Shown here piece after piece: positions 21,746 through 59,806 of a stretch of DNA of 64,000 nt (the stretch's first letter is position 1; the number at the start of each line of letters is the position of its first letter). The stretch is from NCBI GenBank assembly GCA_025594325.1, contig JANHCV010000001.1, positions 1,178,001 to 1,242,000 of the forward strand, in the 5' to 3' direction. The translations under genes and the position numbers were made by a program. This DNA comes from Blastocladiella emersonii ATCC 22665 (taxonomy: Eukaryota; Fungi; Blastocladiomycota). The notes beneath the pieces were generated by a model. The model ran no database searches. It saw only the letters and a list, made by a program, of their open reading frames with translations, and had not been told where the DNA came from.

Positions 21746-23269
21746 ATGAAAATGAATGACAAAGGAGCACTCGTCGACGCATGGATCTCGCTGTCGGTGT
21801 ACTCGGCCACGCTGCCCATCAACCTGTACTTTGCGCGCAAGTTCTGGCGCGAGTGGACCCTCGCTGGCCGCCGCCGCGCTGGGCTCGAGCACCAGCAGTA
21901 TGTTCTGTGGGTGTCGTTTTCGGCCGTCCACGCGCTGCACATGGCGAGCTCGGCGGCGCGGATCCTCGAGGAGCAGGCTGGCATGGTCCAGTGCCCGTCA
22001 GGACCGAGCGCCTCGCTGTGCTGGCTCGGGGCTGCGCGAGCGAGCACGCTGATCCTTGACGCAGCGTGTCTGGGCGAGGTGCTGGCGCTCCCCGTGTACC
22101 CGGTCCTCCTGCTTGGCACGGCACTCGACGCGCTGCCTCGGCTGCAGCTGACTCGCCACGTTTTTACGGGTTGCAAGGCGCTGCTCCTCGTCCTGACGGC
22201 CGTCCTCGCGACGCTGATCCCGCTGCGCACGGCGCTCCGCCTGATCGGGCCGGGCGCGTGGCTCGGGCTGGGCACCTTTTTCGGCGTATACGGACTGGTC
22301 TTCAACCTCTACTTTGGGATGCTCGTGGTCCTGGCCACCATGGCGCTCGCGGGCATCTTTTGGATCATTGCGCGGTCGCGTCCTGGCGCTGCGGCGCGCA
22401 CTAGCATTCGTGCCTCTCGACCCACTTTACAGCAGCAGCACGACCGAGATCAGGCCACTGCAGCGGCACCTACTCGGCTGCACTTGTCTCCCGGTACCGC
22501 CACAACACCTGCCGTTGTGGGCGAGAACAGCCCTTCGTGCGAGCCATCACTGCCCAAGTCTCGCAGCGGCGAGCGTCCAAAACGCACATCCTCATTCTCG
22601 CGTGCCAAGCTCCTCGTATCATTGAAGCGCGCTTGCGGCCGACCGCACACGGTTGAACCACTGAACGACACCGTGGTCGACCCGAGGACCAGCGACGGTT
22701 CGAGCGATACCCAGTACCAGCGGTGCTTTGTTCGACTCGCCGTGCTCGTGGCGTGGACGGTACTGCTCCTTGGCGGGAACGCCTACTTGGTTTCAGGCGC
22801 TGCAGGGCTCTCGGCGCAGCTCAACGACGTGATCGGATGGGTGAGCGCGCGCTTGATCACCGTCAGCTTCTACCGCGCGCGAAAGTTGCTGCGCGACGTG
22901 ATGATTCTTTGGCGCCGGCTTCCAAACGCCGAGGCGGGGACGCTCCTCGCGAGCGCGTGGAATCCGCAACAACAACAACAACAGCAGCAGCAGAAGCAGT
23001 CGGGCAACATGACTGCGTTGTCGTCGCACCATCACGCTGCGACTTCGTCGACTCGACCAACGACGTTGGCGTCTGCGACGGAAAATTGGAGCACGCTTGG
23101 CCGTAGTTCGAGCAACCACCATCAGCACCAAAGCCGCGATGATGCTCATGAGATTGGAGACCATTCCAGCGACAATGATGCAGCAGCCTCCTATTACGTG
23201 ATGAGCCTTGCGCGGAGTGGACAACGGGACGACGAGGGGAAGAGTGACGCGCTCCCCTTGCCAACTTGA
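21746..23269 (+). CDS. Orphan 7-TM GPCR-like protein, paralog A copy 1 (507 aa, intronless)
   Basis: Seven hydrophobic segments with a long Ser/Pro/Arg-rich loop between TM5 and TM6. Motifs EVLALPVYP and IGWVSARLI shared with 57045-58493 and 58739-59806. PolyQ in the tail. Confidence 0.75.
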   Translation: MKMNDKGALVDAWISLSVYSATLPINLYFARKFWREWTLAGRRRAGLEHQQYVLWVSFSAVHALHMASSAARILEEQAGMVQCPSGPSASLCWLGAARASTLILDAACLGEVLALPVYPVLLLGTALDALPRLQLTRHVFTGCKALLLVLTAVLATLIPLRTALRLIGPGAWLGLGTFFGVYGLVFNLYFGMLVVLATMALAGIFWIIARSRPGAAARTSIRASRPTLQQQHDRDQATAAAPTRLHLSPGTATTPAVVGENSPSCEPSLPKSRSGERPKRTSSFSRAKLLVSLKRACGRPHTVEPLNDTVVDPRTSDGSSDTQYQRCFVRLAVLVAWTVLLLGGNAYLVSGAAGLSAQLNDVIGWVSARLITVSFYRARKLLRDVMILWRRLPNAEAGTLLASAWNPQQQQQQQQQKQSGNMTALSSHHHAATSSTRPTTLASATENWSTLGRSSSNHHQHQSRDDAHEIGDHSSDNDAAASYYVMSLARSGQRDDEGKSDALPLPT

Positions 23270-24495
23270 AGGCGCGACGCTCACGCGCGCGTCTAGGAAA
23301 TACAAACAGTTTTGGGAACGTGATGCAAGTAGTCCATGCCGAGAAACTCAAGCGCACACGCCGGCCGGCTTGCCGTGAGCGACGCGGGACGCCATCAAGT
23401 GAGCGATCAGACTCGACGCGTTTCAGGCTGCGTGCGCCACAGTGGCTGAGTGGCGCGACGCGCGAGCGCATGCTAGGCGGTAATCCGATCCCCTGGGCGC
23501 GTTCTCGGGGCGCAGGTTTGTCAAACTCGCTCGCTCGACTCAGAAAGGACTGCGGAGCACGCACAGCCACGGGCGAGCTAGATGATGGCCATTTGTGGGC
23601 GGGAGCACCACGTTCAGGCAGGAACTCATCATCGGGTGTTGAGCTGTGCAGGTCAAGCGAGAGGAGGCCACGATACAGCTAGTCAGGGTGGTGTATTCCT
23701 GCTTCGGCACTGAACCAGGGCTGGGTGAGTGAGGGAGACTAACAGAAGCGGGGAGCGCCGCCGCGGGAGTGCGGCAGGCGGCGAGGCGGGATGCGGACAA
23801 ACCACGCGAGATCAAGGTGGATGATGACTCCGATCACCACTGCATGAACGACGTGTAACAGAGGGTCCCCGACCGAGAACGCCGCGACAAGCGTGCGCCA
23901 GAAGATAACCATGTTGGATCCCACAAGCAATATGTTGACGGAATCGGACACCACGCTTGGTTCGACAAGCTGGTAAGCGTTGACAATGGTTCGAGAGTGC
24001 CGCGGGAGCGCAACTGGCCGTTGTGGTCAGTGTAATCGGAGTCGGAGAGATATGCTCAGCATGACGGACTCAAGCGGTGAACTACTCCGCAAACAAGAGG
24101 ATGATGTGGTACACGCAGGAACAACCCTTCAAAAGCGAATGCGGCTCAACCGCTGCTTCTGCATGTCGTCGCACAGAGCGAGGTTCTCCGCCAGGGCCAG
24201 GGACGCGTGCTACACGACGGCAATGCGAGACTGTCGGCCATGTATAGTTGCGACGTGTGAAGCAGTTCCATTTGATGATAGTTTGAGTGACGCTAACGTT
24301 AAGAGCATCGATAAAGGTCCAGTACCACTAGCGCAGGGAGCAAACGGGAGGCTGCGTGCGCGGCTCGGAGGGAAGCCTGCTCCGTAACCCCAGCAGGAGC
24401 CTCGCAAACCGGAAAAGGGTAAGAACAGCGAGCTGGAACGAGGAGATTGACCAGGCCGGAACGGCCTGGTCAGGGGCACAAGAAAAAAAAAGAAA

Positions 24496-24577
24496 CGACA
24501 ACGACAGGGTTCGAACCTGTGAGCGACTAGCGCAACTGATTAGTAGTCAGTCCCCTTAACCACTCGGGCACGTTGCC
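24496..24577 (-). tRNA. tRNA-Ser, anticodon ACT (copy 1)
   Basis: Reverse complement of 31879-31960; same cloverleaf with long variable arm and G73. Confidence 0.88.
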
Positions 24578-24956
24578 GTCAATTTTTGGACACATTTCCT
24601 ACCCCCGCTACGAGATTTATGAACTCTTCTCTCCTTCAAGTCCGCTCTCGGACCCTTGGCACAAAATATGAGTTTAATAGGCCAGGACTAGTCCAAATAC
24701 TACCAGATAATCATCAAATGATTGGCAGGCTTACTGGGCACCATTAGAGGTCTTGAAATACATTACAATATTACTCGCTGATTAGATGCGTTAAACCAAG
24801 CTATCCCTTTAGCGACGACACAATGTGTTCACGCGCGTGCCCGACCCGGAACATCAAAAGTCGCTGCACACCTCGGCGTTCCAGGCTTCAAAAACAAAGG
24901 GGAGCAAGCGTGAGGCTATTCCAGGGCAAAAACACTTTGCCACCAGGATGCAAAAG

Positions 24957-25028
24957 GGGCTCGTCCGGGGATTGAACCCGGGACCTCGCACACCCGAAGC
25001 GCGAATCATACCACTAGACCAACGAGCC
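24957..25028 (-). tRNA. tRNA-Pro(CGG) (copy 1)
   Basis: Reverse complement of 31428-31499. Confidence 0.92.
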
Positions 25029-26470
25029 TTGAGGACAGGCCGCTTCATAAAACCCATATTGGCCCGTCTGGACTGGTCGCACTGTCCCGAGTGCGGAGGT
25101 GCGCGCTCCACTCCCCGTCCCCGTCAGTTGGGCGACGGCGACCACCGGGAGCGGATAGAGATACCAAGCATCGAGGAGTCGCATCCCATGCCTGTCGTGC
25201 ATTGCTCTAAAACACCGCGCAAGGCCATGGCTGCGTCGGAGAAGAGGTTTCGGCGAGCCCCGGGTCGGAGGCGAATTAGAGCACTAAGTTCCCGACCCCT
25301 CCCACACCCGTAAATTAATTCTGATAATTGCCGGAGCACCACTAAAATTGCTCATTTGACATATCTGAGCCGTATGTGCAATATCAGCCCGGACCAATAT
25401 GCCACTCAATTCAAGAAGCTAAGCCTTAAGTCCGTTTTTCGTCCGAGCGACCAAACCGAAAGTTTTTTTCAACTTTGCACGGTCGGACGAGTTCTCGATA
25501 CCCCGACACCCCGACTCGCAGGTTTTCACATATTCCGGACCTCTGAAGGTCGCTGATCACGAATCTGCCTTCAGAAAAATGTTTCCGATGCATCTTGAAT
25601 TTAGACAGCTAAGTCGTGTCACGTGAGCCGAGGCCTCGAGGCGCGGCCAGCGACGCGTCGTTCACCTCCGCGTGACCACGAAGCACGCGTTGGATCACTG
25701 CGCGGGTTGGTTTGCTCCCGCCCCTGTCCGACGAGTGAAAGGGTAGCATCCGCAACAGAACCTTGCACAGACAATCGCGCGGAACAACGAATGAGATGCT
25801 CACTCGCCCAGGCGACTGTCACTTGGTACTTGGTGGCGCAGACGCGGCAACGCGCACGCGTCTGCTTCATACCACATCGCTGCGAGTGCAACTGGTTATC
25901 CAGCTGTACGAACAGCCGCGCGTTGGGGGCTACTCCCAACCACCAGTTCTGGACGATCCCTCGCAGCTCAAAGCTCAACATGCACGCGAAGCTGGCGCGT
26001 AGCGTGCTAGATTAGGCACATGGTGCGACCGTTATCGCGACTCGATGGCCCAGGTGCCATCGCGCGAGCGCGCGGGCATCACGGTTTGAATCAAGGGCAC
26101 TACTACCACGTCGACTTGCCCGTTTCGCTCACCCGTACTGAAACTGCGGAGCGGTTGACAGACTTCGCGAGCAACCGTTCGAGGAGACCCGTGAAAGCGA
26201 CGAGCGTGGTGCCAAACCTTTGAAAGCTGACTCGCTTCAGCGTCAAGGATGAGGGGGATCACTTGCCTGTCAAAAGGAGTTTTTGCAGAAGCGCGGTTTT
26301 TATCTCAAATCAATCATCGAGCGGGGACAAGATGGTCGAGGAGAACGGCGCAACAAGAGATGGAAGGGAGAGGGAAGAGCAAATCGAACGAGTTCAACGA
26401 GAAAGAGGAACAGGGGGACAGGGAGACGAGAAAGGCAAACAACGAGGAGGGAAGAAGCACATCGGCGGAG

Positions 26471-27560
26471 TCAGCGATGTCGAGGCAGGATGATCGGGCC
26501 GCACGCAGCAAGCCGTACCTCAGCAACGCGAATCCACTTCTGGACCACGGCGTCGCAGTGCGTCTTGGTCCCGTGGAGCGAGCCCTTGACAATCGCGTAG
26601 ATCCGGTTGTAGATAACCGGCGCGTTGGCCTGGAGGATCGCGGCGACAGCGGCGCCCACGACCTCGGGTTCCTCGGACTGGATCTTGCGGATGGCCGCGC
26701 GGACCTTCTTGACCAGGTCGCCGAGCTGCAGCGACGCCAGCGCCGCCAGGTCCGTGGCCAGGTCTGCGCGACCGGTACTCGAGGATCACGCGGGCCGTTG
26801 CGGCGGCGGCCGAGTAGTCGCGCGAGTCGATCGCGTTGGCGCGGGTCGCGAGTCCCGTGCACTGGTTATACACGGTGCGCGAGACACGGCGGATGGCCGA
26901 TTTCTTGGGACCCTTGAGGACCTTGGCCGGCTTGACCTTCTTGGGGGTGGTCGAGGTGACGGCGGGCGTGAGGCCCGCGGTGTCGACTTTGACCTGCAGC
27001 TGCTGGTGCTCGGGAGCGACGGGGGTCTGTCGGGTGGTTTGGTTCGTCGTGAGTCGTGGATCAGTGAGCGAGGGAGAGCTGAGACAAGACGTACCCCGCC
27101 GAGACTGAGCTGCGACGCGGACTTGTGGAGGCGCCTTGAGCGGCGCCTTGAGCGCGCCGACGACCTTGTCGAGGAACGACGGCGAGGACGGCTTGAGCGT
27201 CGACTTGGAGGCCGCCGAAGGCTTGGACACGGGAACGAGGTGCTCCTCGGAGCCCGAGTTAGCGACGGCGACGGCGTGGTCGGCCGCCGGCGTCTCGACC
27301 GACTCGTCGTGGGCGAGCGCGGGAGCGGGAGCGGGAGCGGGAGCCGGGCTGGCGGCGGCGACCACGGTGGAGTTGATCTGGAGCTGGGCGAGGGCCGAGA
27401 ACGTGTCGGGGACGGCCGTAGCCGTCGACGGGAGCGGCGCGGCCTCGTGCAGCTTGATGGCGGCGGCGGGCGCGGACGTCGCCGAGATCGACTCGTACAT
27501 GGCGCAGAGTCGGGCGATGCGGCCGCGGCTGCGCATGAGGGGCACCTCGAGCGACACCAT
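26471..27560 (-). CDS. Hypothetical protein starting in the IR spacer and ending in the left arm; reading frame apparently interrupted (possible pseudogene)
   Basis: Strong GC3 bias from ATG 27560. Canonical-looking 68-nt intron 27027-27094. Codon bias switches to the +1 frame at about 26765 (DLATDLAALASLQLGDLVKKVRAAIRKIQSEEPEVVG...). The 3' end is uncertain. Confidence 0.55.
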
Positions 27561-29617
27561 GATGCGGATGGTGATGATGGTGAGCTTGAGGTCGAAGACG
27601 ACTGACGGACTGGCCTGGAACAGGGCCGGTCGGGTCGGTGGGGTCGGGTCGGATGCAGGTGGCGCAGGAGCGGCGGTGCCGAGATGCTGAGCCGTTCAGA
27701 TCGGGCCGTAGTCGAGCGTCGCGAAGATGACGGCGCGGTAGACGTCGATGGCGGAGGCGAGCGTGAACGGGAGCGGGCGGGCGATGCCGATGTGCGCAGG
27801 ATGCAGCCGGGGGTGGTGCAAATCCAGGATAGGACGTGCGGGAAGCTCGGTCAAGATGTTGCAGTGCGGGATACGGGTGGGACTGTAGTCAGCAGGGCAG
27901 CGCGATGGACGGGCAGGGGTATGAGGAAGAGCGAGCGGGGATGGCGGGGCTTCCGGCCGCCTTCATAGTTCCAGTCCGTTGCATGAAGAAAGGTCGTCGC
28001 TGTCAAGCCGATTCAGTCACGACGGCAGACTGACTGGTTCGTCGTCGACGGGCCGTGGTGGCGGAGCGGGAGCAGGATGAAAACCAGTCGGAAAGCACGC
28101 GCGACTGGCCACCTGACCCGAGCTGACCCTTGACCTGCTTTCACCGCTCGCTGGAGGTGTGATCGCGGTGCAGGGGTGACGTCGATGGCGCGGATGCGAA
28201 GAACGTGATGTATCGCACTTTTGGTGTGTATCGAAAGCGCGGGGAGTGTTGCAGCTGCAAAAAGGGATCGACAGCGGAGCGCATAGAAAGCTTGCCAAGG
28301 TCAATCGGACCGTCGCTAGGGTGCAACGGGACTGCGACCCCGACGCCGCGGCAGTCGCCCCGAGCGAGCACCGGGTTGAGAGTTTAGAGGCGATGGTGCG
28401 ACCGACGCAAGGGCGAGAACCTGCGGAAAGCCGCCGTGACGCCCGAGTCGCGCCGCGACGCTCTAGGAAGGTAGGAAACGACGCGGTACAGCTCGAGGAA
28501 GCGCGTAAGCGCGAGTATATACGAAAGCAGCTACCGAGCGAGCGCCACCGGTGCGTCTTCGCGAAGGATCGAGCCGGCGGTGTTTGTGCGTGTCGAGGAA
28601 CGACCGGGGAGGGGTTGCGCGTGTCGGGGAGAGTGGTGACGAGGCGGCGGCGGGCGGAGGCGCGCAGTGGAGGAGGTTCGCATGGTCGGTGCGGCATAGG
28701 TTCAGCAAGTCGTGTCGAGCGGGATACATGGGTTTCGGGACAGGCGGTTAGCGCGGGCAGCGGGAGTGCGATCAGCGACGACGCACATGGGTGGCCGGTG
28801 GCGTCGTCGGGCCGTGTGGCGGCGCCACGTTGGGACCGCGGAGAACGCGCACGCGGGGCACGTCGACGGCTGAGATGAGACACGACGCGGTGCGCGTGCG
28901 AGCCCGCCGAGTCGACCACCACTCGCTGAATCTGCGGGTCGGGCTACAGAGCGCGTCGAAGCGAGTCAGTCTGTCAGTGAGGCGTGTCCGACAGCGCGGA
29001 CGTCCCGTTGCACGGCCTCGATGCTGTGCAGCCGTGGAGAGTGCGACCGCTTGGCGCCCGAGACCGACGGCCGCCGCGAGCTCGTTGTTCCACTCTACAA
29101 CAGTTCCACTCTACGACAGAGGCAGTTCGGTAAGGTCGCGGCCGTGACGGCGGCAGCGGATCCGTGAGCTCCGAGCGCGGCGGGGATTGCTGATGTCTCG
29201 CGTGATGTTCTGCGCGATCGGCGCGAGGTCTGCCGCGTCGCGGGAGCACCGGAGCGCTCACGCGAGTGCTCTCGGCGCACGTTGCAGTCACTCGATGACA
29301 TCTTTGCACCGAATCATCATCGGGGTTGGTTTCATCTCGGGCGGGTGAGGATGGCGAAGAAGAGAGGGAGAGCCAGCGGAAAGAGCGACGCGTTCTGGAG
29401 TGCAACAGGCCGCCGCTCGCTCGCTCACTTTCCGCCGTGGCCTCTCTCACTTACGCTCTCCAACGAAGACTATCATGGCGCACTACTTGATGCAATTGCT
29501 TCGACGGTGAAACTGGTGCTCGGCCGCGCGCCGTGCAGTCTGCTGTCAACTCGGGGGGGCACTTGGCAGCAGCGGCGCACCGCACTCCGAGTCGTCGCGC
29601 CTCATTGCCAGCCTAGA

Positions 29618-29985
29618 CAACGCGATCGACTCGCGCGACTACTCGGCCGCCGCCGCAACGGCCCGCGTGATCCTCGAGTACCGGTCGCGCAGACCTGGCC
29701 ACGGACCTGGCGGCGCTGGCGTCGCTGCAGCTCGGCGACCTGGTCAAGAAGGTCCGCGCGGCCATCCGCAAGATCCAGTCCGAGGAACCCGAGGTCGTGG
29801 GCGCCGCTGTCGCCGCGATCCTCCAGGCCAACGCGCCGGTTATCTACAACCGGATCTACGCGATTGTCAAGGGCTCGCTCCACGGGACCAAGACGCACTG
29901 CGACGCCGTGGTCCAGAAGTGGATTCGCGTTGCTGAGGTACGGCTTGCTGCGTGCGGCCCGATCATCCTGCCTCGACATCGCTGA
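29618..29985 (+). pseudogene. 5'-truncated copy of the spacer gene's 3' end (in right arm)
   Basis: Begins mid-ORF at the inner junction (...gcctaga|caacgcgatcgac...); lacks the start and first exon. Confidence 0.8.
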
Positions 29986-31427
29986 CTCCGCCGATGTGCT
30001 TCTTCCCTCCTCGTTGTTTGCCTTTCTCGTCTCCCTGTCCCCCTGTTCCTCTTTCTCGTTGAACTCGTTCGATTTGCTCTTCCCTCTCCCTTCCATCTCT
30101 TGTTGCGCCGTTCTCCTCGACCATCTTGTCCCCGCTCGATGATTGATTTGAGATAAAAACCGCGCTTCTGCAAAAACTCCTTTTGACAGGCAAGTGATCC
30201 CCCTCATCCTTGACGCTGAAGCGAGTCAGCTTTCAAAGGTTTGGCACCACGCTCGTCGCTTTCACGGGTCTCCTCGAACGGTTGCTCGCGAAGTCTGTCA
30301 ACCGCTCCGCAGTTTCAGTACGGGTGAGCGAAACGGGCAAGTCGACGTGGTAGTAGTGCCCTTGATTCAAACCGTGATGCCCGCGCGCTCGCGCGATGGC
30401 ACCTGGGCCATCGAGTCGCGATAACGGTCGCACCATGTGCCTAATCTAGCACGCTACGCGCCAGCTTCGCGTGCATGTTGAGCTTTGAGCTGCGAGGGAT
30501 CGTCCAGAACTGGTGGTTGGGAGTAGCCCCCAACGCGCGGCTGTTCGTACAGCTGGATAACCAGTTGCACTCGCAGCGATGTGGTATGAAGCAGACGCGT
30601 GCGCGTTGCCGCGTCTGCGCCACCAAGTACCAAGTGACAGTCGCCTGGGCGAGTGAGCATCTCATTCGTTGTTCCGCGCGATTGTCTGTGCAAGGTTCTG
30701 TTGCGGATGCTACCCTTTCACTCGTCGGACAGGGGCGGGAGCAAACCAACCCGCGCAGTGATCCAACGCGTGCTTCGTGGTCACGCGGAGGTGAACGACG
30801 CGTCGCTGGCCGCGCCTCGAGGCCTCGGCTCACGTGACACGACTTAGCTGTCTAAATTCAAGATGCATCGGAAACATTTTTCTGAAGGCAGATTCGTGAT
30901 CAGCGACCTTCAGAGGTCCGGAATATGTGAAAACCTGCGAGTCGGGGTGTCGGGGTATCGAGAACTCGTCCGACCGTGCAAAGTTGAAAAAAACTTTCGG
31001 TTTGGTCGCTCGGACGAAAAACGGACTTAAGGCTTAGCTTCTTGAATTGAGTGGCATATTGGTCCGGGCTGATATTGCACATACGGCTCAGATATGTCAA
31101 ATGAGCAATTTTAGTGGTGCTCCGGCAATTATCAGAATTAATTTACGGGTGTGGGAGGGGTCGGGAACTTAGTGCTCTAATTCGCCTCCGACCCGGGGCT
31201 CGCCGAAACCTCTTCTCCGACGCAGCCATGGCCTTGCGCGGTGTTTTAGAGCAATGCACGACAGGCATGGGATGCGACTCCTCGATGCTTGGTATCTCTA
31301 TCCGCTCCCGGTGGTCGCCGTCGCCCAACTGACGGGGACGGGGAGTGGAGCGCGCACCTCCGCACTCGGGACAGTGCGACCAGTCCAGACGGGCCAATAT
31401 GGGTTTTATGAAGCGGCCTGTCCTCAA

Positions 31428-31499
31428 GGCTCGTTGGTCTAGTGGTATGATTCGCGCTTCGGGTGTGCGAGGTCCCGGGTTCAATCCCCGGACGAGCCC
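31428..31499 (+). tRNA. tRNA-Pro(CGG) (copy 2)
   Basis: GGCTCGT/ACGAGCC acceptor, TGGTCTAGTGGTATGAT A-box, anticodon loop TT-CGG-GT, CCGGG-TTCAATC-CCCGG T-arm, followed by a TTTTT terminator. Confidence 0.92.
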
Positions 31500-31878
31500 C
31501 TTTTGCATCCTGGTGGCAAAGTGTTTTTGCCCTGGAATAGCCTCACGCTTGCTCCCCTTTGTTTTTGAAGCCTGGAACGCCGAGGTGTGCAGCGACTTTT
31601 GATGTTCCGGGTCGGGCACGCGCGTGAACACATTGTGTCGTCGCTAAAGGGATAGCTTGGTTTAACGCATCTAATCAGCGAGTAATATTGTAATGTATTT
31701 CAAGACCTCTAATGGTGCCCAGTAAGCCTGCCAATCATTTGATGATTATCTGGTAGTATTTGGACTAGTCCTGGCCTATTAAACTCATATTTTGTGCCAA
31801 GGGTCCGAGAGCGGACTTGAAGGAGAGAAGAGTTCATAAATCTCGTAGCGGGGGTAGGAAATGTGTCCAAAAATTGAC

Positions 31879-31960
31879 GGCAACGTGCCCGAGTGGTTAA
31901 GGGGACTGACTACTAATCAGTTGCGCTAGTCGCTCACAGGTTCGAACCCTGTCGTTGTCG
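31879..31960 (+). tRNA. tRNA-Ser, anticodon ACT (copy 2)
   Basis: GGCAACG/CGTTGTC acceptor stem, D-arm CCCGAGTGGTTAAGGG, anticodon stem ACTGA/TCAGT with loop CT-ACT-AA (anticodon 31912-31914), long variable arm GCG-CTAGT-CGC, T-arm ACAGG-TTCGAAC-CCTGT, discriminator G, T-run terminator immediately downstream. Confidence 0.88.
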
Positions 31961-33186
31961 TTTCTTTTTTTTTCTTGTGCCCCTGACCAGGCCGTTCCGG
32001 CCTGGTCAATCTCCTCGTTCCAGCTCGCTGTTCTTACCCTTTTCCGGTTTGCGAGGCTCCTGCTGGGGTTACGGAGCAGGCTTCCCTCCGAGCCGCGCAC
32101 GCAGCCTCCCGTTTGCTCCCTGCGCTAGTGGTACTGGACCTTTATCGATGCTCTTAACGTTAGCGTCACTCAAACTATCATCAAATGGAACTGCTTCACA
32201 CGTCGCAACTATACATGGCCGACAGTCTCGCATTGCCGTCGTGTAGCACGCGTCCCTGGCCCTGGCGGAGAACCTCGCTCTGTGCGACGACATGCAGAAG
32301 CAGCGGTTGAGCCGCATTCGCTTTTGAAGGGTTGTTCCTGCGTGTACCACATCATCCTCTTGTTTGCGGAGTAGTTCACCGCTTGAGTCCGTCATGCTGA
32401 GCATATCTCTCCGACTCCGATTACACTGACCACAACGGCCAGTTGCGCTCCCGCGGCACTCTCGAACCATTGTCAACGCTTACCAGCTTGTCGAACCAAG
32501 CGTGGTGTCCGATTCCGTCAACATATTGCTTGTGGGATCCAACATGGTTATCTTCTGGCGCACGCTTGTCGCGGCGTTCTCGGTCGGGGACCCTCTGTTA
32601 CACGTCGTTCATGCAGTGGTGATCGGAGTCATCATCCACCTTGATCTCGCGTGGTTTGTCCGCATCCCGCCTCGCCGCCTGCCGCACTCCCGCGGCGGCG
32701 CTCCCCGCTTCTGTTAGTCTCCCTCACTCACCCAGCCCTGGTTCAGTGCCGAAGCAGGAATACACCACCCTGACTAGCTGTATCGTGGCCTCCTCTCGCT
32801 TGACCTGCACAGCTCAACACCCGATGATGAGTTCCTGCCTGAACGTGGTGCTCCCGCCCACAAATGGCCATCATCTAGCTCGCCCGTGGCTGTGCGTGCT
32901 CCGCAGTCCTTTCTGAGTCGAGCGAGCGAGTTTGACAAACCTGCGCCCCGAGAACGCGCCCAGGGGATCGGATTACCGCCTAGCATGCGCTCGCGCGTCG
33001 CGCCACTCAGCCACTGTGGCGCACGCAGCCTGAAACGCGTCGAGTCTGATCGCTCACTTGATGGCGTCCCGCGTCGCTCACGGCAAGCCGGCCGGCGTGT
33101 GCGCTTGAGTTTCTCGGCATGGACTACTTGCATCACGTTCCCAAAACTGTTTGTATTTCCTAGACGCGCGCGTGAGCGTCGCGCCT

Positions 33187-34710
33187 TCAAGTTGGCAAGG
33201 GGAGCGCGTCACTCTTCCCCTCGTCGTCCCGTTGTCCACTCCGCGCAAGGCTCATCACGTAATAGGAGGCTGCTGCATCATTGTCGCTGGAATGGTCTCC
33301 AATCTCATGAGCATCATCGCGGCTTTGGTGCTGATGGTGGTTGCTCGAACTACGGCCAAGCGTGCTCCAATTTTCCGTCGCAGACGCCAACGTCGTTGGT
33401 CGAGTCGACGAAGTCGCAGCGTGATGGTGCGACGACAACGCAGTCATGTTGCCCGACTGCTTCTGCTGCTGCTGTTGTTGTTGTTGTTGCGGATTCCACG
33501 CGCTCGCGAGGAGCGTCCCCGCCTCGGCGTTTGGAAGCCGGCGCCAAAGAATCATCACGTCGCGCAGCAACTTTCGCGCGCGGTAGAAGCTGACGGTGAT
33601 CAAGCGCGCGCTCACCCATCCGATCACGTCGTTGAGCTGCGCCGAGAGCCCTGCAGCGCCTGAAACCAAGTAGGCGTTCCCGCCAAGGAGCAGTACCGTC
33701 CACGCCACGAGCACGGCGAGTCGAACAAAGCACCGCTGGTACTGGGTATCGCTCGAACCGTCGCTGGTCCTCGGGTCGACCACGGTGTCGTTCAGTGGTT
33801 CAACCGTGTGCGGTCGGCCGCAAGCGCGCTTCAATGATACGAGGAGCTTGGCACGCGAGAATGAGGATGTGCGTTTTGGACGCTCGCCGCTGCGAGACTT
33901 GGGCAGTGATGGCTCGCACGAAGGGCTGTTCTCGCCCACAACGGCAGGTGTTGTGGCGGTACCGGGAGACAAGTGCAGCCGAGTAGGTGCCGCTGCAGTG
34001 GCCTGATCTCGGTCGTGCTGCTGCTGTAAAGTGGGTCGAGAGGCACGAATGCTAGTGCGCGCCGCAGCGCCAGGACGCGACCGCGCAATGATCCAAAAGA
34101 TGCCCGCGAGCGCCATGGTGGCCAGGACCACGAGCATCCCAAAGTAGAGGTTGAAGACCAGTCCGTATACGCCGAAAAAGGTGCCCAGCCCGAGCCACGC
34201 GCCCGGCCCGATCAGGCGGAGCGCCGTGCGCAGCGGGATCAGCGTCGCGAGGACGGCCGTCAGGACGAGGAGCAGCGCCTTGCAACCCGTAAAAACGTGG
34301 CGAGTCAGCTGCAGCCGAGGCAGCGCGTCGAGTGCCGTGCCAAGCAGGAGGACCGGGTACACGGGGAGCGCCAGCACCTCGCCCAGACACGCTGCGTCAA
34401 GGATCAGCGTGCTCGCTCGCGCAGCCCCGAGCCAGCACAGCGAGGCGCTCGGTCCTGACGGGCACTGGACCATGCCAGCCTGCTCCTCGAGGATCCGCGC
34501 CGCCGAGCTCGCCATGTGCAGCGCGTGGACGGCCGAAAACGACACCCACAGAACATACTGCTGGTGCTCGAGCCCAGCGCGGCGGCGGCCAGCGAGGGTC
34601 CACTCGCGCCAGAACTTGCGCGCAAAGTACAGGTTGATGGGCAGCGTGGCCGAGTACACCGACAGCGAGATCCATGCGTCGACGAGTGCTCCTTTGTCAT
34701 TCATTTTCAT
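33187..34710 (-). CDS. Orphan 7-TM GPCR-like protein, paralog A copy 2 (identical, in right arm)
   Basis: Identical 507-aa translation to 21746-23269; the upstream intergenic region is also duplicated. Confidence 0.75.
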   Translation of the reverse strand: MKMNDKGALVDAWISLSVYSATLPINLYFARKFWREWTLAGRRRAGLEHQQYVLWVSFSAVHALHMASSAARILEEQAGMVQCPSGPSASLCWLGAARASTLILDAACLGEVLALPVYPVLLLGTALDALPRLQLTRHVFTGCKALLLVLTAVLATLIPLRTALRLIGPGAWLGLGTFFGVYGLVFNLYFGMLVVLATMALAGIFWIIARSRPGAAARTSIRASRPTLQQQHDRDQATAAAPTRLHLSPGTATTPAVVGENSPSCEPSLPKSRSGERPKRTSSFSRAKLLVSLKRACGRPHTVEPLNDTVVDPRTSDGSSDTQYQRCFVRLAVLVAWTVLLLGGNAYLVSGAAGLSAQLNDVIGWVSARLITVSFYRARKLLRDVMILWRRLPNAEAGTLLASAWNPQQQQQQQQQKQSGNMTALSSHHHAATSSTRPTTLASATENWSTLGRSSSNHHQHQSRDDAHEIGDHSSDNDAAASYYVMSLARSGQRDDEGKSDALPLPT

Positions 34711-34963
34711 GTGCGTTGCAGCGAGTCGCCTTTACATTCGTTTCGTTGTTGTGTGTGAGGTTCAGTAAACGTGTGTGTGTTCGGCGTTGCCCTCACGTTG
34801 CTGTATTCGGGAGACACGCGAGACGCGCGCGATCACGTCCACGCGCATGAACAACGCGTCCCTTCTCTGCGGGTCTATCCGCGCGCAGGGCTCCCGCGCA
34901 AGACTCTCCCGCGCAATCAACCGTGCCATCAACTGGTCCTGTATTCGTCACATCACTACCGCG

Positions 34964-35394
34964 TCACCACTCGGCCGGGTTGCCGAACCGGTGGTCGCGG
35001 AACCACCCCGCGCCGTGCTCAAAGTACTCGGCGCGCGACACGTACGCCACGGGCGCCGTCGCCGCGCCGCGCCACGCGTCCACGACCGGGTCCGCCGCGC
35101 GCCGCACGTCGAGCGAAAAGGCCTGTGGCAGCTCGCGCGTCAGCTCGAGCCCGAGTCGGTCCGCGAGCCCTGGGATTGTCGCGCCGCCGCCGCTGCACAC
35201 GACCGTCGCTGCCGTGATCGGACTCGTTCTCGAGTTGTCGTTGTCGCAGCGACGGCGCACCGCCTGCACCGCCGAGAGGACCAGGTCCTGTAGGCCCGCC
35301 TCGTCCACGCCCACCAGCGACGGGTGGAACAGCGCCTCGGGCACGCGCACGCGTTCCACGTTCAGCCGGACCTGGTGCGCACGAAGGAAACGCT
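34964..35394 (-). pseudogene. ARP5: 5'-truncated ARP5 3'-end fragment (in right arm)
   Basis: Identical to 21062-21492 (RFLRAHQVRLNVERVRVPEALF...GNPAEW*), cut at the outer junction. Confidence 0.85.
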
Positions 35395-35453
35395 TCCCCT
35401 CGCGTTGACAGCGCAGGGGAATCTTTGAGTTCAAGCAAGTCAATGCTGTGTAT

Positions 35454-40877: not shown

Positions 40878-40914
40878 TCAATTATATACATTGTATGCTA
40901 AGTTGCACGTCGCG

Positions 40915-47271: not shown

Positions 47272-47363
47272 GTCGGCCCGCCGCCCGCGTTCCCCTCTCT
47301 CTGCCAGCATCAACCAAGCATCCTTGCGACGTACCAACCCCCTCCCCCATCAACCACTTCATC

Positions 47364-48515: not shown

Positions 48516-48822
48516 GCGCGCGGGCGAGGCGCGCGCGAGTCGCCTCGATTTTTGTACATAAATAGCGATGTTGCTTCTTCAAACCCCTGTCTCTCGTCGC
48601 CATGAGCTCGCTCGTGTCTATGAGCTTGGTTGTCCCCATACGCTCGCTCGCCTCCGAGCGGGGCTTCAGGCGGTGCACGCTTCCACAGCGCGACGTGGCG
48701 CCTCAGTTCAGGGCGCCGTCGACGCGCTTCCGCTCTCTCTCCCCCTCACGCCCGCTAAACATCTCATGTAACTTGGCCCGAACCCCCACACGCACGCCTC
48801 GACTCCCAGCAACACCGTCACC

Positions 48823-50118: not shown

Positions 50119-50183
50119 GTGATAGGAAAGTGTATAAACTCGTGAATCGACGACAACATCGCGCCTCGCGCTCGCTCGCTCGC

Positions 50184-53100
50184 TCAGAAAAAGTTGGCCA
50201 GCCACTGGTACACCTTGCTGACGCCGCGGTCGCCGCGCTTCTTGTTGGCGCCGGCCTTGTACGCGCGGTGCGGCGGGAGGGGCCAGTCCGCGTCGCCCTG
50301 CTGCTGCTGATGCTGCGGGTGCTGGGCCGCGCCGGACCCGTTGCCCGTACCCACAGCGGCCGTCGGCGCGGGCCGCCGTCCCGCATTTGGTGCCGGGCTC
50401 CACGCAGCCGACGACGACGTGGGCCACGGCGCCGACGCGCTACGGTACCGGTCGTGCGGGTTGGCGCCGAGCATGCGCGGCGACTGCAGCTGCGCCATGA
50501 CGTCGCTCGACGGGCCCATCATGGCAGCCATGGCGCGCGCGAGGGTTTCGACGGGGTTGGGTGTCGCGGACGCGGGAACGCCGATCCCAGCGCCGCCGCC
50601 GTTACTCGCGCCGGTCCCGGACATGGCGGCAGCGACGGCCGCAGCAGCCGCGACCACGGCGTTCGCGCCCGTCGCGTTGGCGACGCCGGCGCCAGTCGCA
50701 AAAGGCAGCGGGATGGGTTTCGGCGATGCGCCGAGCGTGTAGATGAGAAACGCGTACTCCTGGGCGAGATCCTCGAGGTACGAGTACTGTCCGCTGCTGC
50801 CGCAGTGTCCGACGTCGTCGACGCGGAGGAGGAGGAGGCGGTCGTCCTCGGGCGGTTTGGACGCGCGGAGCTTGGCGACGTACTTGACGGGCTCGAAGAA
50901 GGAGACGCGCGGGTCGTTCATGCCGCCGACGACCATCATGTGCGGGTACGGTGTGTCGTTGCGGACGTTGGTGTACGGGCAGTAGGCGCGCATCACGTCG
51001 TAGATGGCGCGGTCGTTCGGGTCGCCCCACTCCTCGTACTCGAACGTGGTCCACGGGATCGACGTGTCGAACATCGTGTTAATCACGTCGACGAAGGGCA
51101 CCTCGGTCAGCGCGGCGCGGACCAGGTGCGGGACCGCGTTGACGACGGCGCCGATCAGCAGGCCGCCGGCGGACCGCCCGTAGATGGCGAGCAGGTCGGG
51201 CGTCGTGTACCCCTCGGCGAGGAGGAACGAGATGCACGAGATAAAGTCCTTGAAGGTGTTGGGCTTCTTGTCGTTCTTGCCGTCCTCGTACCACGCGTTG
51301 CCGAGGTCGGCGCCGCCGCGGACGTGCGCGATGGCGAAGATGAACCCGCGGTCGAGCAGCGAGAGCCGCTGGGTCGAGAAGATGGGGTTGACGCAGCTGC
51401 CGTAGGCGCCGTACGCGTGCAGGAGGAGCGGGTTGGGCACGCGGCGGCCCGTGGCCGGGTTGACGGTGACGAGGTCGCGGCGGAACACGAGCGAGAGCGG
51501 GATCGCGGTGCCGTCCTCGCCGATCGGGAACAGCCGCACGCTCGCGTACAGGTCGGGCGAGTAGGGCGTGGGCCCGCACACGCGCTCCTCGTGGACGATC
51601 GTAAACGTGCGCGCGTCCATGTCGTAGTCGACGACCTGCTTGGGCTGCACGAAGCTCGTGTACGTGTAGCGCAGGGTGGCGGTCGGGAATAGGACCTGCT
51701 TGGACAGGTCGGCCACCTCCTCGCTGACGGTCATGGGCCACAGCGAGTAGACGGGGTCCGAGAAGGAGATGTAGTGGAAGGTCTGGAGCGACTCGTCGGC
51801 GAGGTCGATGACGCGCACGTTCTGGAGGCAGTTGGACCGCTCGAAGACGACCAGGTGCCGCGCGCGCACCGTGCAGTCCTCGATGAGCACAAAGTCGCGC
51901 GCCGCGATCACCGTGTCGCGGCCGTCGAGCGGGATCGTCGACCGCGACGCGAGGTGCGGCAGGCGGCCCGCGTCGGCGGCCTCGGTTGGCACCGCGGCCG
52001 TCTTGTCGACGCGGAACAGCCAGTTGTTGCGGTGGGTGCCCTCGTTGGTCAGCACGTACAGGTGGTCGCCGCGCGATTTCACCGTGTACTGGACGCCCTC
52101 GGTGCGCGGGAACACGACGCGCGGCCACGCGAGCCCGCGGCCGGCGGGGCCGGGCGAGGTCGGCGACACGGCGTGCACCTCGTCGAGGTCAATGTACCGC
52201 GTCTCGGAGGTGACCTGGGCGCCGCTGTTGACAAAGACGTAGCGGCCGTCGCCCGACTTGGTCATGGTGAGGTAGAAAGAGTCGTCTGTGTCCTCCCACA
52301 GGACCACGTCGCGGACCGGGTCTTGGTCGGCCATGGCGTGGCGCATGACGCGGTAGGCGCGGTCGTTGGCGTCGAGGGCGAGGTAGTAGGCGTGGTCGCC
52401 GTCGGCGGAAAACTCCCAGTCCTCCCAGCACCCGGGGATGCGTTTGGGCTGGACCGTGTGCGTTTGCAGGTCGAGGATCAGGAACGTGTACCGCTCGTCG
52501 CCGCGCGAGTCGATGCCAAAGGCGACCCACCGGCCGCACGGCGAGTGGCGGAGGCAGCCGAGGCGGAAGAAGGTGGCGTCGGCAAACTCGGGCAGGTCGG
52601 CGATCACGTTCTCGTCGAGGTAGACTTCGACCTCGAGCTCGTCGGCGCCGGCGGCGGCGTTGGCGGCGGTGGTCGAGATGGACGGCGGGAGCGTCGCCGT
52701 CGCGTCTGCATCGGCTCCTGCTTCGGGTGCCGTCGCGGCGGCCTCGGGGGCGGGCACCGTGCGGCGCGGGCGCTCGCGGACGTGCTGGCGGTACTCTTGG
52801 CCAGCGACCTTGCGTGCGTAGTAGGTCCACCCGTCGCTGAGGGTGACGCGGGCCGTGGCCTCGTCCTCGTCGGTGCGGGCGACAAACTCGCGGTAGAGGT
52901 GGCGCTGCAGGGTGGCGGTGGGTTTCAGGGACGCGGTGGTGTAGGCGTTCTCGGCGGCAATGTAGGCGAGGACGTCGGGGTCGTCGCGGTCGTGCAGCCA
53001 GGCGTAGTCGTCGTGCCACTCGTCGCCGTGCACGTTGGTCCACGCCTTGCGGCGGGCGGGCGCGTGCGGCGGCGGGGTCGGGCAGGCCGCGGCCGAGGGC

Positions 53101-53607: not shown

Positions 53608-53836
53608 GGGTGCGGCGGCGGCCGATGCATGGGGATGTACCAAGAGGAGGGAGGCGAAGCGCGCAGCCAAAGTGGCGCAACGCGACGCACGCCGCGCAGC
53701 CGTCAGCCGCCGCGCACGTGAGCGCTCCCACTTGCGTTCTGGAGCCAGGGCCTTTCTGCAGGTTTTCACGCCGCGTCCGCGGTTTCCTCTTCCTCTCTCC
53801 ACCGTCGCCCTCACGGAACGCATCACCACCACCGCC

Positions 53837-54463: not shown

Positions 54464-54540
54464 TCGCGTCGTCCGCGTCCCTGTCGCCCCCCGCTCTGGC
54501 TGGTCCACGGGTGTGTGGGTGGGCAAACTCGGGCGAGCGA

Positions 54541-54638
54541 GCGTGCGTGCGTGCGTGCGTGCGTGTGTGTGCATATTAGAACTTATATCCGACTCCATTC
54601 TTATCATCAGCTGCGCAATCAATCAGTCAGTCAGTCAG
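54541..54638. repeat. Microsatellites (GCGT)6/(GT)n and (AATC)2(AGTC)4
   Basis: Read directly between the convergent 3' ends of the small ORF and ISN1. Confidence 0.85.
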
Positions 54639-54680
54639 TGGGGGTGGACGCCCGCTCGGCTCCGTGCGACGCGAGCTCGC

Positions 54681-56475: not shown

Positions 56476-57044
56476 GGTGCTGTGTGCAAGTGCTACGAGT
56501 TGCAAAGAGTGCAAGAAGTTGTACGTGAGGGCTTTGATAAGCGGAGAGGGAGCGTGAGAGCGCGCGCGAGACAGCTGCAAGGGACCGATCGGTCAAGCCA
56601 CCGCCTGAGCCACACGACATGAGAGTCACGAAAGAACAATAAACGCCGATGTCCTTTCTGCTGTGGGTGCCCGATCCTCGGCATTGACGCGCACCTGGCG
56701 ACGATGGACCGGTACTCGTCGTCCAAGCTCAACCACTGCCGCGACTGCGTGGTCGCGTACGAGCGCTCGCGGCAGGCCAAGCTCGTCCCGCTGCGCGAGC
56801 TGCTCCCCGCCCACATCGAGCGCCAGGTGAGGTGGCACCCGACGAACGCATGAGCGAGGGACGCGTCGCGACTTCTACACAGACGCAGCAACGCGTTCCT
56901 CTAATGCACCAGTGATCGGTTTACTCGAGATCGTGACGCACGGCGTCGAACTTCCACGCCAACGCGAGGAACGGTCTGTCTCGCGAGTATCTCGCACCTC
57001 ACGTGATAGTTCGACGCGTCGCTCATCTCGAGGGGACAATCCAC

Positions 57045-58493
57045 CTATATTCGAGGCGTCAACACCGCCTCCTCGGACCGAGCGACGCCCGGCCGCGGGA
57101 CGCCCGAGAACCCGATCGTCGTGCGCCGCCGCTCCCACGACCCGTCGTCGATGTCGGTCGCGGCCAAGCGCTCGCCCGTTAACATGGTCTCACGGCGCTT
57201 GCCGCTGCCGAGATCGGCGCCCTCGCTCCCCGTCTTCTTGAGCGTGAGCCCGAGCTGCAGCGTGCCGTTGACGTCGCGGCGCCCGATCGTCGGCGGCGCC
57301 CACTCGGTCGCGAGCGTTCCCGCGTCGGCGTTGGGCAGCTGCCGCCGCAGCTTCATGATGCGCTTGAGCTCGCGCATCGACAGGAAGAAGTTGGCCGTGA
57401 TGACGCGCGCAAAGGTCCAGCCGATGGCGTTGAGCAATACCACCGTCAGCTGGTCGGTTCCGAGCGACAGGATCGCCGTGATGATGACCAGGACCACGGT
57501 CGTGACCGTGTAGATCCACAGCCGCCGGATCGCGATGCGGTACCGGTCGGCCGGCGACGGCGCCGAAGTCGAGTGCGGTCGGTGGCCCGGGAGACGCGAC
57601 TTGAGCGAGGTGAAGGACGACGTCGCGCGCGCGGGTGAGGTTGGCGTGGACAGCATCGCGGCGGACCCGTTGGCCGCGGCCGAGGTCCCCGAATGCGTGG
57701 CGCCCGACTGCGCGGCGCCCGATGGGCCGTGGATCGAGACGGCGGACGCTGTAGCGTTGCTGGCCGTCACGTACGAGTCGGTGGTCGTTTCCTGCAGGCT
57801 CGGCGACTCGACGGGCAGGAGCGTCTTGCGGCGTTTAAACAGTTCGCGCATGTTCATGCTCGCGAGCTGGCCGCGCTTGCGGCCGGGCCCGCCGATCGAC
57901 CCGCCACCCGCCATGGCGAGCAGGACCACAATGTACCCGACGGCCCACAGCGCGACGGCCGAGACGAGGAAAAAGTAGGTAATGGTGACCGTGTTGATGA
58001 TGAGGGCCTCGGCGGCGAGGATCTCGAACCCAAAGTGGATGAGCGCCGTCTGCCACGACGTGGCGACGACCTGGGCGAGCGTCGCGAGCCCCGTGAGGTA
58101 CAGGACAAACTTGCGGAACCGCTTCATGGCCGGGCGCGAGTGGTTGAACTGGCCGGCCATGGCGAGGATCGCGGCCGGGTACACGGGAATCCCGGCCGTC
58201 TCGAGCAGCACGCCCACGTTCTTGGTCAGCGAGATGGGGCAGCTGCCGAGATCGTTGCCCGAGTGGTTGGACGGCACGCCGTTGCATTGCTCGGTGGTGA
58301 TGGCGAGGCAGGCGTAGGTGGTGTGGACGAGCTGGGCCGACGTGAAGATGATCCAGACGAAGACGTTGACCCGCGTCTTGGAGTCGGGCCGCCTCGCGAG
58401 CTGCTTCGCAAAGTCGCTGAGGAAGTAGATGCAGACCGGGATCCCGGCCACGAAGATGACGAGCGAGACCCACGCGCTAGCAAGCGGGTCCAT
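57045..58493 (-). CDS. Orphan 7-TM GPCR-like protein, paralog B (482 aa, intronless)
   Basis: Seven hydrophobic segments, long TM5-TM6 loop, ETAGIPVYP, IGWTFARVI, LPNADAGTLATEW; two Cys in the first extracellular loop. Confidence 0.75.
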   Translation of the reverse strand: MDPLASAWVSLVIFVAGIPVCIYFLSDFAKQLARRPDSKTRVNVFVWIIFTSAQLVHTTYACLAITTEQCNGVPSNHSGNDLGSCPISLTKNVGVLLETAGIPVYPAAILAMAGQFNHSRPAMKRFRKFVLYLTGLATLAQVVATSWQTALIHFGFEILAAEALIINTVTITYFFLVSAVALWAVGYIVVLLAMAGGGSIGGPGRKRGQLASMNMRELFKRRKTLLPVESPSLQETTTDSYVTASNATASAVSIHGPSGAAQSGATHSGTSAAANGSAAMLSTPTSPARATSSFTSLKSRLPGHRPHSTSAPSPADRYRIAIRRLWIYTVTTVVLVIITAILSLGTDQLTVVLLNAIGWTFARVITANFFLSMRELKRIMKLRRQLPNADAGTLATEWAPPTIGRRDVNGTLQLGLTLKKTGSEGADLGSGKRRETMLTGERLAATDIDDGSWERRRTTIGFSGVPRPGVARSEEAVLTPRI

Positions 58494-58738
58494 GGTTTCA
58501 TGTTTTGCGCAGATCTGCGACTGACGATCTCATTGTGTTCGAGCGCAAGGAGGGAGCGAGAGCAGCCGAATCGCCGGGGCACTCTGGCCCCGATCCAGAA
58601 CGGAGATATCGCATCACGTGATTGTTCGACGCGTCGAGCATCGCGTCTCCCGCGTGTCTCGCATCTCCCGCATACCGTGCATCGCCACCGCCACCGCAAC
58701 CACACCACCGCAACTTAATTTGGTATTTACCCATGTAT

Positions 58739-59806
58739 TCATGACCGTCTCCCACCCGTACGGCCACTGTGCGGTACGGCTGCTGCCCGGCTCCCCGCAG
58801 CCGCGTTGCCCACTTGCCGCAACGTGTCGAGGTCGCGAACCGCTTCGACAGAGTACGTGAAGCAGACCTCCATGATCCGCACGCACACCCAGCCGACCGA
58901 GTTGAACATAATGTGCGGCAGCTGGTACACGCTCGCGATCGCAGCCACGGCCACGGCGAAGGCGAGCGACGCGTACCCGGTGAAGAGCCGGAGGCGGAAC
59001 ATGGTAATTTCAAACTGCTTCTCGGCGCCGTCAACCGCGTCCTTGTCCGACGAGTCGTCCAGCTTCTCGACGCCGACCGCGGCCAGCGACGTGAACAGAG
59101 CACGGACCTTGGCCACCATCCCGCGCGCGGTGCGCTTGCGCCGCCGGAACAGCTTGAGCGAGGAGACGCCAAAGTAGATCGACCGCGCCTCGCCCTTGAA
59201 GTTGAGCGAAAAGCGCAGGACGAACATGAGCGACGCGAGCCCGAGCGCGAGCAGGGACACAAAGACGCCGAGGAAGAGTGGGTGCGCAAACTCGTCAATG
59301 AGGTACCGCGCCGATGCCGTCAGCGTGGTCCAGCTCGGGTCCGTAAAGTAGCCGACCTTGATTGCAAACTCGGCAATCTCGGTCGCGGCCTGGAGCAGCG
59401 CGAGCGCCGCCAGCAGCGTGCCCGCGGCGATCTTGGACCGCCGGACCGACAGCCCGCAGATGTCGGCGACGGCGCCGACCAGGAGCGCCGGGTAGACGGG
59501 CAGCGCGAGCGTCTCCAGTACATCGCCGGCGACACGAAGCACGCTGCCGGCGCGATAGTCGAAGGCCGCGCGCGTGAAGCCGTCGTACAGGTCGCCGCTG
59601 ACCACGTCGTCGGTGGTCACGGCCAGCGCGTAGCCAAAATGCGCAAGTTGAGCGAGCAGGATGAGGAGCCAAGCAAAGAGGTTGGTCCGGGCCCCGGATC
59701 GGCGGTGATAGCACCGTCGCCCGAACCGAATGACGAGGTAGATGGGGACCGGCAGCGTGACGGCGTGTAGGGCCACGGCCAGGTGCGCGCTGATGCGAGA
59801 TTCCAT
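58739..59806 (-). CDS. Orphan 7-TM GPCR-like protein, paralog C (about 355 aa, intronless)
   Basis: Probable ATG 59806 (MESRISAHL); ETLALPVYP, VGWVCVRIM, VGNAAAG; tandem upstream of paralog B. Confidence 0.72.
   Translation of the reverse strand: MESRISAHLAVALHAVTLPVPIYLVIRFGRRCYHRRSGARTNLFAWLLILLAQLAHFGYALAVTTDDVVSGDLYDGFTRAAFDYRAGSVLRVAGDVLETLALPVYPALLVGAVADICGLSVRRSKIAAGTLLAALALLQAATEIAEFAIKVGYFTDPSWTTLTASARYLIDEFAHPLFLGVFVSLLALGLASLMFVLRFSLNFKGEARSIYFGVSSLKLFRRRKRTARGMVAKVRALFTSLAAVGVEKLDDSSDKDAVDGAEKQFEITMFRLRLFTGYASLAFAVAVAAIASVYQLPHIMFNSVGWVCVRIMEVCFTYSVEAVRDLDTLRQVGNAAAGSRAAAVPHSGRTGGRRS

Follow-up and report, generated by a model that had tools for sequence, protein, structure and literature searches.

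The stretch analyzed here, a window of 64,000 nucleotides (nt) from the blastoclad fungus Blastocladiella emersonii ATCC 22665 (contig JANHCV010000001.1, positions 1,178,001 to 1,242,000 of the forward strand), carries several genes for seven-transmembrane (7TM) proteins shaped like G-protein-coupled receptors (GPCRs). Three paralogs, named A, B and C, were found as uninterrupted open reading frames (ORFs), making four frames in the window when the second copy of A is counted (Table 1). Their proteins are 23-30% identical to each other and align across their entire cores. All three contain E-x3-[LI]-P-V-Y-P in transmembrane helix 3 (TM3; residues 111-119 of A and 98-106 of B and of C), [IV]-G-W-x3-R in TM7, with the arginine at position 369 in A, 363 in B and 310 in C, and [LV]-[PG]-N-A-x-A-G after TM7. 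The initial annotation of this stretch had proposed three paralogs in four copies, and the frames, the identities and the motifs establish that they are real. The shared motifs that it listed hold in TM3, in TM7 and after TM7 of the three proteins, but not throughout C, which has A-H instead of A-W in TM1, lacks both cysteines of the first outer loop and carries a degenerate version of the motif after TM7 (hereafter, the tail motif). Additionally, a profile search of the genome revealed a fourth and more divergent paralog, D, of 554 amino acids (aa; H9P43_000299), encoded about 300 kb farther upstream on the contig of the window (G000:C1:875379-877040). D keeps the tail motif; its TM3 Glu is exchanged for Asp and its TM7 Arg for Lys, the Gly-Trp of TM7 is missing and the third inner loop reaches about 180 aa.

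The public gene models differ from these ORFs. H9P43_000433 (804 aa) joins residues 1-328 of C to B from residue 7 onwards through a GT..AG "intron" of about 343 nt (approximately 58481-58823), which deletes the tail motif of C, the spacer between the two genes and the start of B. The models H9P43_000416 and H9P43_000423 are truncations of A with 219 aa, ending after helix 5. The B. emersonii genome was annotated ab initio with funannotate, about 24% of its gene models have a single exon, and the terms "RNA-seq" and "transcriptom" do not occur in the text of the genome paper (PMC9730499). Three observations support the view that A, B and C are separate genes free of introns, as the initial annotation had stated. 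The full ORFs stay in frame across helices 6 and 7 as well as the most conserved motif of the family; among the relatives in other species, each protein consists of one seven-helix unit, about 330-500 aa long; and a direct fusion would join the cytosolic end of TM7 of C to TM1 of B and thus place B upside down with respect to the charge bias and the cysteine-containing loop described below. Therefore, the intron-bearing ab initio models at A and at C/B are probably wrong, and a genuine 14-helix C-B protein is unlikely.

Seven helices were obtained for A, B and C in a hydropathy scan and for B and C in AlphaFold models. The model of C reached a predicted local distance difference test score (pLDDT) of 78.5 and a predicted template modelling score (pTM) of 0.76. 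For B the pTM was 0.62 and the pLDDT 67 overall, with the blocks of the helical core mostly between 70 and 97, and the helices were placed at residues 3-34, 38-66, 86-116, 121-153, 158-195, 314-344 and 351-385. In both models TM3 is kinked at P-V-Y-P. The N-terminus has fewer than 12 residues, and the loop between TM5 and TM6 measures 41-70 aa in C, about 117 aa in A and 118 aa in B; in the latter two it is disordered, and 23-30% of it is Ser or Thr. The hydropathy scan and the models thus bear out the very short N-termini and the TM5-TM6 loop of over 100 aa in A and B that had been noted from the sequence.

The orientation of the proteins was deduced from their charges. Across 19 members of the family the density of Lys plus Arg was 0.168 in loops 1-2 and 3-4 and in the proximal tail, compared with 0.053 in the N-terminus and in loops 2-3, 4-5 and 6-7. 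By the positive-inside rule, this bias puts the N-terminus outside and the C-terminal tail in the cytosol, which is the GPCR orientation. A pair of cysteines lies in the TM2-TM3 loop, on the proposed outer side, in 16 of the 19 members. Basic stretches flank the third inner loop, with L-F-[KR]-R-R-K following TM5 in B and C and an R-L motif preceding TM6. A protein of the PAQR/AdipoR type was excluded, since its topology is the opposite one.

The range of the family was determined by an exhaustive HMMER search, in which a profile of the three sequences A, B and C was compared with 1.84 billion representative proteins at E ≤ 1e-3. This family count, which the initial annotation had suggested as a check, returned 21 proteins, one of them a low-complexity false match. 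The 20 family proteins all came from B. emersonii, Blastocladiella britannica or Catenaria anguillulae PL171, that is, from two genera only, and all of them are annotated as "hypothetical proteins". The 17 further members retrieved in this way had E-values from 1e-23 to 1e-4, a similarity far beyond chance. No member was detected in Allomyces macrogynus, A. javanicus, Sorochytrium or Paraphysoderma, whose proteomes form part of the parent collection of the same search; as the profile was built on just A, B and C, and the family evolves very fast, these absences are to be read as "not detected". A positive control, a word-indexed search with the neighboring S9 peptidase of the window as the query, recovered orthologs from A. 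javanicus, A. macrogynus, Sorochytrium and Paraphysoderma, together with dozens of chytrids and Mucoromycota, which confirms that the proteomes of Allomyces, Sorochytrium, Paraphysoderma and chytrids are present in the parent collection. A word-indexed protein search was too insensitive for this family, with no matches for C alone and two for a 19-sequence profile. A-D are members of a small, unnamed and fast-evolving seven-helix family, detected only in Blastocladiella and Catenaria.

Two other multi-helix proteins of the genome were compared with the family. An ORF of 384 aa on another contig (G000:C18:1895795-1896949) has no Pfam match and no tail motif; it aligned with the family over TM1-TM2 only (hhalign probability 82%, E-value 1e-5) and, by this sequence similarity, may be a more distant relative of A-D. 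The orphan 7TM protein encoded 156 kb downstream on the contig of the window (G000:C1:1398218-1399321, minus strand) had an hhalign probability of 0.1% against the family and no match to the family profile, and its kinship was rejected.

The members are grouped in the genomes. In Catenaria six family accessions lie on one contig of 115 kb, and in B. britannica four lie on one contig of 12.2 kb, with a further pair bearing adjacent accession numbers. The maximum-likelihood tree consisted of species-specific clades (Catenaria 99/94; a five-member B. britannica clade 100/99), whose terminal branches measured 0.6-2.6 changes per site; one-to-one orthologs were absent even between B. emersonii and B. 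britannica. The family has grown by local duplication, seen in the tandem C-B pair, in the inverted duplicate of A and in the arrays of Catenaria and B. britannica. Such rapid birth and death of genes in tandem arrays, combined with species-specific clades, is typical of receptor families that face the environment.

The initial annotation had based its name for the family on a conserved Glu in TM3 and a conserved Arg in TM7. Both residues are present in A, B and C, but the pair does not hold across the family. The Glu was found in 11 of 18 members; in its place stand Ala or Gly (the five-member B. britannica clade), Asn (one Catenaria protein) or Asp (D). The Arg was found in 16 of 21, with Lys in D, His in three members and Gln in one, and it is kept by four of the five proteins of the B. 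britannica clade that are devoid of the Glu. The Gly-Trp of TM7 has been lost in that same clade and in member P0014, which keeps the Glu. The tail motif, R-R-Q-[LIV]-P-[NT]-x-[DE]-A-G-T-L-A-x-x-W, was nearly universal in the 21-sequence alignment, with an invariant Gly and a degenerate form in C. Therefore, the most conserved feature of the family is this motif after TM7, rather than the Glu/Arg pair. In the AlphaFold model of B the Glu of TM3 and the Arg of TM7 both sit 12 residues in from the outer end of their helix. TM3 and TM7 are adjacent helices in the GPCR fold, which makes a Glu-Arg pair geometrically plausible, and visual rhodopsin has a comparable Glu113-Lys296 lock. The TM3 Glu-TM7 Arg pair could plausibly resemble that lock, by analogy. 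Kinship with the microbial rhodopsins (PF01036), which carry a retinal-binding Lys at mid-TM7, was excluded, since the conserved TM7 residue is Arg, His or Gln, with Lys in D only, and no Pfam match was found.

The family could not be placed by sequence. When A, B and C and all 19 members were compared with Pfam, and also with NCBIfam, only scattered chance matches were obtained; no Pfam family, including those of Ste3, Git3/Gpr1, the cAMP receptor, 7tm_1, 7tm_2, 7tm_3 and Frizzled, was matched by more than one of the 19 members at E ≤ 10. The 3- and 21-sequence profiles found no GPCR in the PDB, Ste2 included, but only chance helix-pair matches to cytochrome oxidase. The initial proposal of a lineage-specific family that is distinct from Ste2, Ste3, Git3, the cAMP receptors and the opsins was thus upheld for the 19 members and for the other Pfam models as well.

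The predicted structures, by contrast with the sequences, did point to a fold class. The top 50 Foldseek matches in the PDB were all GPCRs, from classes A, T, F and C, although weak ones (E-values 0.02-0.16). In an exhaustive structural search with the model of C, the fungal pheromone receptor Ste2 (7ad3) came first, with a Z score of 16.8, 252 aligned residues and a root-mean-square deviation (rmsd) of 4.5, compared with Z scores of 15.1 for TAS2R14, 12-14 for class A receptors, 13-14 for microbial rhodopsins and 12.7 for AdipoR2. A second Ste2 entry (7qbc) scored 16.4, with an rmsd of 3.9, after re-alignment of the Foldseek list. Ste2 was also first for the model of B (15.7), tied with TAS2R14 (15.2) and followed by TMEM87A (13.8). 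The fold check asked for in the initial annotation thus returned a seven-helix, GPCR-like bundle for both models, with Ste2 as the top match and no strong match to a characterised family.

Two receptor families other than Ste2 also resembled the proteins in structure. The class T receptors TAS2R (8xql, 8rql) were the second-best structural match, with Z scores of 14.6-15.2. These chemoreceptors resemble the A-D family in their very short N-terminus, in the absence of class A motifs, in their rapid evolution and in their tandem duplication. However, they occur in vertebrates only, share no sequence similarity with A-D and possess a short third inner loop. The Pth11-type proteins (PF20684), another lineage-specific and expanded family of fungal 7TM proteins, were the best, though weak and partial, match of the Atlas model of a Catenaria member, over TM1-TM5 (template modelling score 0.66 by target and 0.40 by query). 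They are proteins of the Pezizomycotina, though, and PF20684 matched no member of the family, nor anything in a six-frame search of the genome made without a positive control.

Taking these results together, the A-D family is best explained as a new group of fast-evolving, tandemly duplicating receptors with the GPCR fold that probably serve G-protein-coupled chemoreception, a reading to which we assign a probability of roughly 55%. Coupling to G proteins is favored by the receptor-like features described above together with the many G-alpha loci of the genome: matches to PF00503 that exceed the cut-off fall in about eight to ten places, distributed over contigs 4, 7, 11, 15, 16, 18 and 19 and mostly split into exons, which is a large complement for a fungus. 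Several results weigh against this explanation. No sequence link to any GPCR family was found, no member was found fused to a signaling domain, and the Glu is missing from 7 of the 18 members. Moreover, Ste2 and the other GPCRs lead the rhodopsins and TMEM87A (13.8-14.5) and AdipoR (12.7-13.4) by only 1.5-3 Z units, in a range of Z scores near that flagged as common for helical bundles. Finally, the ESM features of C and of the Catenaria protein P0003 lie weakly near the clusters of THH1/TOM1/TOM3 and GPR137_N (0.86-0.91).

Under the G-protein-coupled reading, the proteins would be surface receptors in the plasma membrane, probably of zoospores or germlings, that sense an external cue. The first outer loop may be closed by a disulfide, and the polar residues that face the bundle at one depth, namely the TM3 Glu and the Gly-Trp and Arg of TM7, would form or gate a pocket in which the ligand binds. 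On the cytosolic side, the third inner loop, which is predicted to be long, disordered and rich in Ser and Thr, could be phosphorylated, as could the tail. The basic, membrane-proximal ends of this loop and the tail motif may dock a cytosolic partner, most likely a G-alpha, with the tail motif serving as a docking or sorting element.

The main rival possibility, to which we give a real but minor chance, is that the proteins are GPCR-shaped and not coupled to G proteins, acting instead as scaffolds or regulators of an internal membrane (vacuole or lysosome), in the manner of GPR137 or plant TOM1/THH1, or as carriers. GPR137 and TOM1 are lysosomal or vacuolar proteins with the shape of GPCRs, and no G-protein signaling by them is known to us. 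THH1/TOM1/TOM3 (PF06454) and GPR137 (PF27607), domain-less 7TM proteins of similar length to A-D, are the nearest named ESM clusters to C and P0003; in addition, a six-frame search of the genome turned up no canonical PF06454 gene, and TMEM87A, the rhodopsins and AdipoR score only slightly below the GPCRs. However, the shared ESM features number 142-161, compared with the 170 that are typical of true family members, and none of the 19 members matched PF06454 at E ≤ 10, a profile that represents THH1/TOM1/TOM3 and not GPR137. The GPR137 and TOM1 proteins are also widespread in eukaryotes. Housekeeping proteins of organelles are usually single-copy and slow to change, whereas the A-D family is amplified, species-specific, limited to two genera and undetected in sister genera.

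That the proteins are very divergent but true homologs of class D (Ste2-type) receptors, extending this class beyond the Ascomycota, appears unlikely. The structural agreement is the best argument for it, as Ste2 was the top match of both models through two of its entries (Z scores of 16.8, 16.7, 16.4 and 15.7; 249-257 residues aligned; rmsd 3.9-4.5). Both are fungal proteins with seven helices, the N-terminus outside and the C-terminus inside, a cytosolic tail rich in Ser and Thr and no class A motifs. A gene for a Kex2-type protease, with Peptidase_S8 and a P-domain, adjoins C; suggestive as a kexin gene beside a Ste2-shaped receptor is, we regard it as an amusing coincidence. By contrast, the margin over TAS2R14 is only 0.5-1.7 Z units, and identity in the structural alignments with Ste2 is 9-12%. 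PF02116 (STE2) was unmatched in the 19 members at E ≤ 10 and in a six-frame search of the genome made without a positive control, and the 21-sequence profile missed Ste2 in the PDB at E < 10. The N-terminus of the family is much shorter than that of Ste2, its third inner loop is much longer, and it has TM3, TM7 and tail motifs of its own. To our knowledge no sexual cycle has been described for B. emersonii, which counts against this reading as well as against the pheromone receptors considered below. Furthermore, the A-D family is multi-copy and tandemly duplicated, and it belongs to the Blastocladiomycota, where Ste2 is unreported, the Ste2 class having been reported from Ascomycota only (PMC12842992).

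The two remaining explanations are highly improbable. The initial annotation had put the proteins forward as candidate receptors for the Allomyces attractants sirenin and parisin, and orphan proteins with the GPCR fold and a polar pocket in a blastoclad do agree, in no more specific way, with receptors of this kind or their orthologs; nevertheless, the suggestion finds no support, since the host is B. emersonii and not Allomyces and no member was detected in the two Allomyces proteomes. As for chance frames or dead genes, the DNA has a GC content of 66%, long spurious ORFs abound on all strands, and C has lost both loop cysteines and a portion of the tail motif, but B. britannica and Catenaria have homologs that share the architecture, the folds are predicted with confidence and the charge bias fits the topology, so that conservation rules out this origin for A and B and only C could be decaying.

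The coordinates of the genes, their motifs and the neighboring features are given in Table 1. Gene A is doubled by an inverted repeat, whose perfectly matching arms are separated by 2,757 nt and bear one copy each; the repeat either arose very recently by duplication or was introduced as an artefact by the HiFi assembly. The S9 peptidase gene of the window has orthologs in B. britannica and Catenaria that lie on contigs other than those of the receptor members listed, with no sign of linkage at the contig level. An ORF of 537 aa (39103-40713, plus strand) had a weak match, below the cut-off (E-value 2.7e-4), to the C-terminal domain associated with the sperm-tail protein NYD-SP28.

Table 1. 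Features of the receptor-like genes and their surroundings, in window coordinates.
Feature	Position	Strand	Evidence or remark
Inverted repeat, left arm	21051-26849		5,799 nt; 100% complementary to the right arm
Paralog A, copy 1 (507 aa, 7TM)	21746-23269	+	Uninterrupted ORF; family profile E-value 7e-91
A, TM3 motif (residues 110-119, Glu111)	22073-22102	+	Translation
A, TM7 motif (residues 363-370, Arg369)	22832-22855	+	Translation
A, post-TM7 hallmark (residues 389-405)	22910-22960	+	Alignment
Inverted repeat, right arm	29607-35405		100% complementary to the left arm
Paralog A, copy 2 (protein identical to copy 1)	33187-34710	-	Translation; carried by the right arm of the repeat
S9 prolyl-oligopeptidase/oligopeptidase B-like gene (H9P43_000430)	50187-53033	-	Single ORF; orthologs across zoosporic fungi and Mortierellomycetes
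Paralog B (482 aa, 7TM), downstream gene of the tandem pair	57045-58493	-	ORF; family profile E-value 1.7e-97
B, post-TM7 hallmark R-R-Q-L-P-N-A-D-A-G-T-L-A-T-E-W (residues 383-398), predicted cytosolic	57300-57347	-	21-sequence alignment
B, TM7 motif I-G-W-x3-R-V (residues 357-364, Arg363)	57402-57425	-	Alignment
B, TM3 motif L-E-x3-I-P-V-Y-P (residues 97-106, Glu98)	58176-58205	-	Prolines give a mid-helix kink
B, outer loop 1 (TM2-TM3) with Cys70, Cys85 and an N-H-S sequon	58239-58286	-	Alignment; small beta hairpin in the model
Spacer from C stop to B start (245 nt)	58494-58738	-	C and B are head-to-tail
Paralog C (355 aa, 7TM), upstream gene of the tandem pair, most degenerate of the three	58739-59806	-	ORF; AlphaFold model
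C, degenerate post-TM7 motif (residues 329-339)	58790-58822	-	Removed by splicing in the public fused model
Kexin-type proprotein convertase gene, 3' part	60012-60965	-	Peptidase_S8 and P-domain; directly upstream of C

Zoosporic fungi steer by chemical cues, and we know of no chemoreceptor that has been identified for any blastoclad. A bolder version of the receptor reading, in which A-D constitute an undescribed class of fungal GPCRs, confined to Blastocladiella and Catenaria and sharing its ancestry with Ste2, acting as chemoreceptors of zoospores gated by a Glu-Arg ionic lock and signaling through the tail motif, is a long shot; if it were true, the origin of Ste2-type receptors would move from the Ascomycota to the early-diverging fungi. 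The published survey of GPCRs in B. emersonii was carried out with Pfam and InterPro domains (PMC9730499), and since the A-D family matches no domain, it was presumably missed there. The value of the finding is tempered, since the family is tiny and its function wholly inferred. Nevertheless, these genes contribute one more case to the question of how frequently, in early fungi, families with the GPCR fold originate or change until they can no longer be recognized. They also offer concrete candidates, short and free of introns, in which the residues to target by mutation are clear, and their host is under development as a model for sensory biology.

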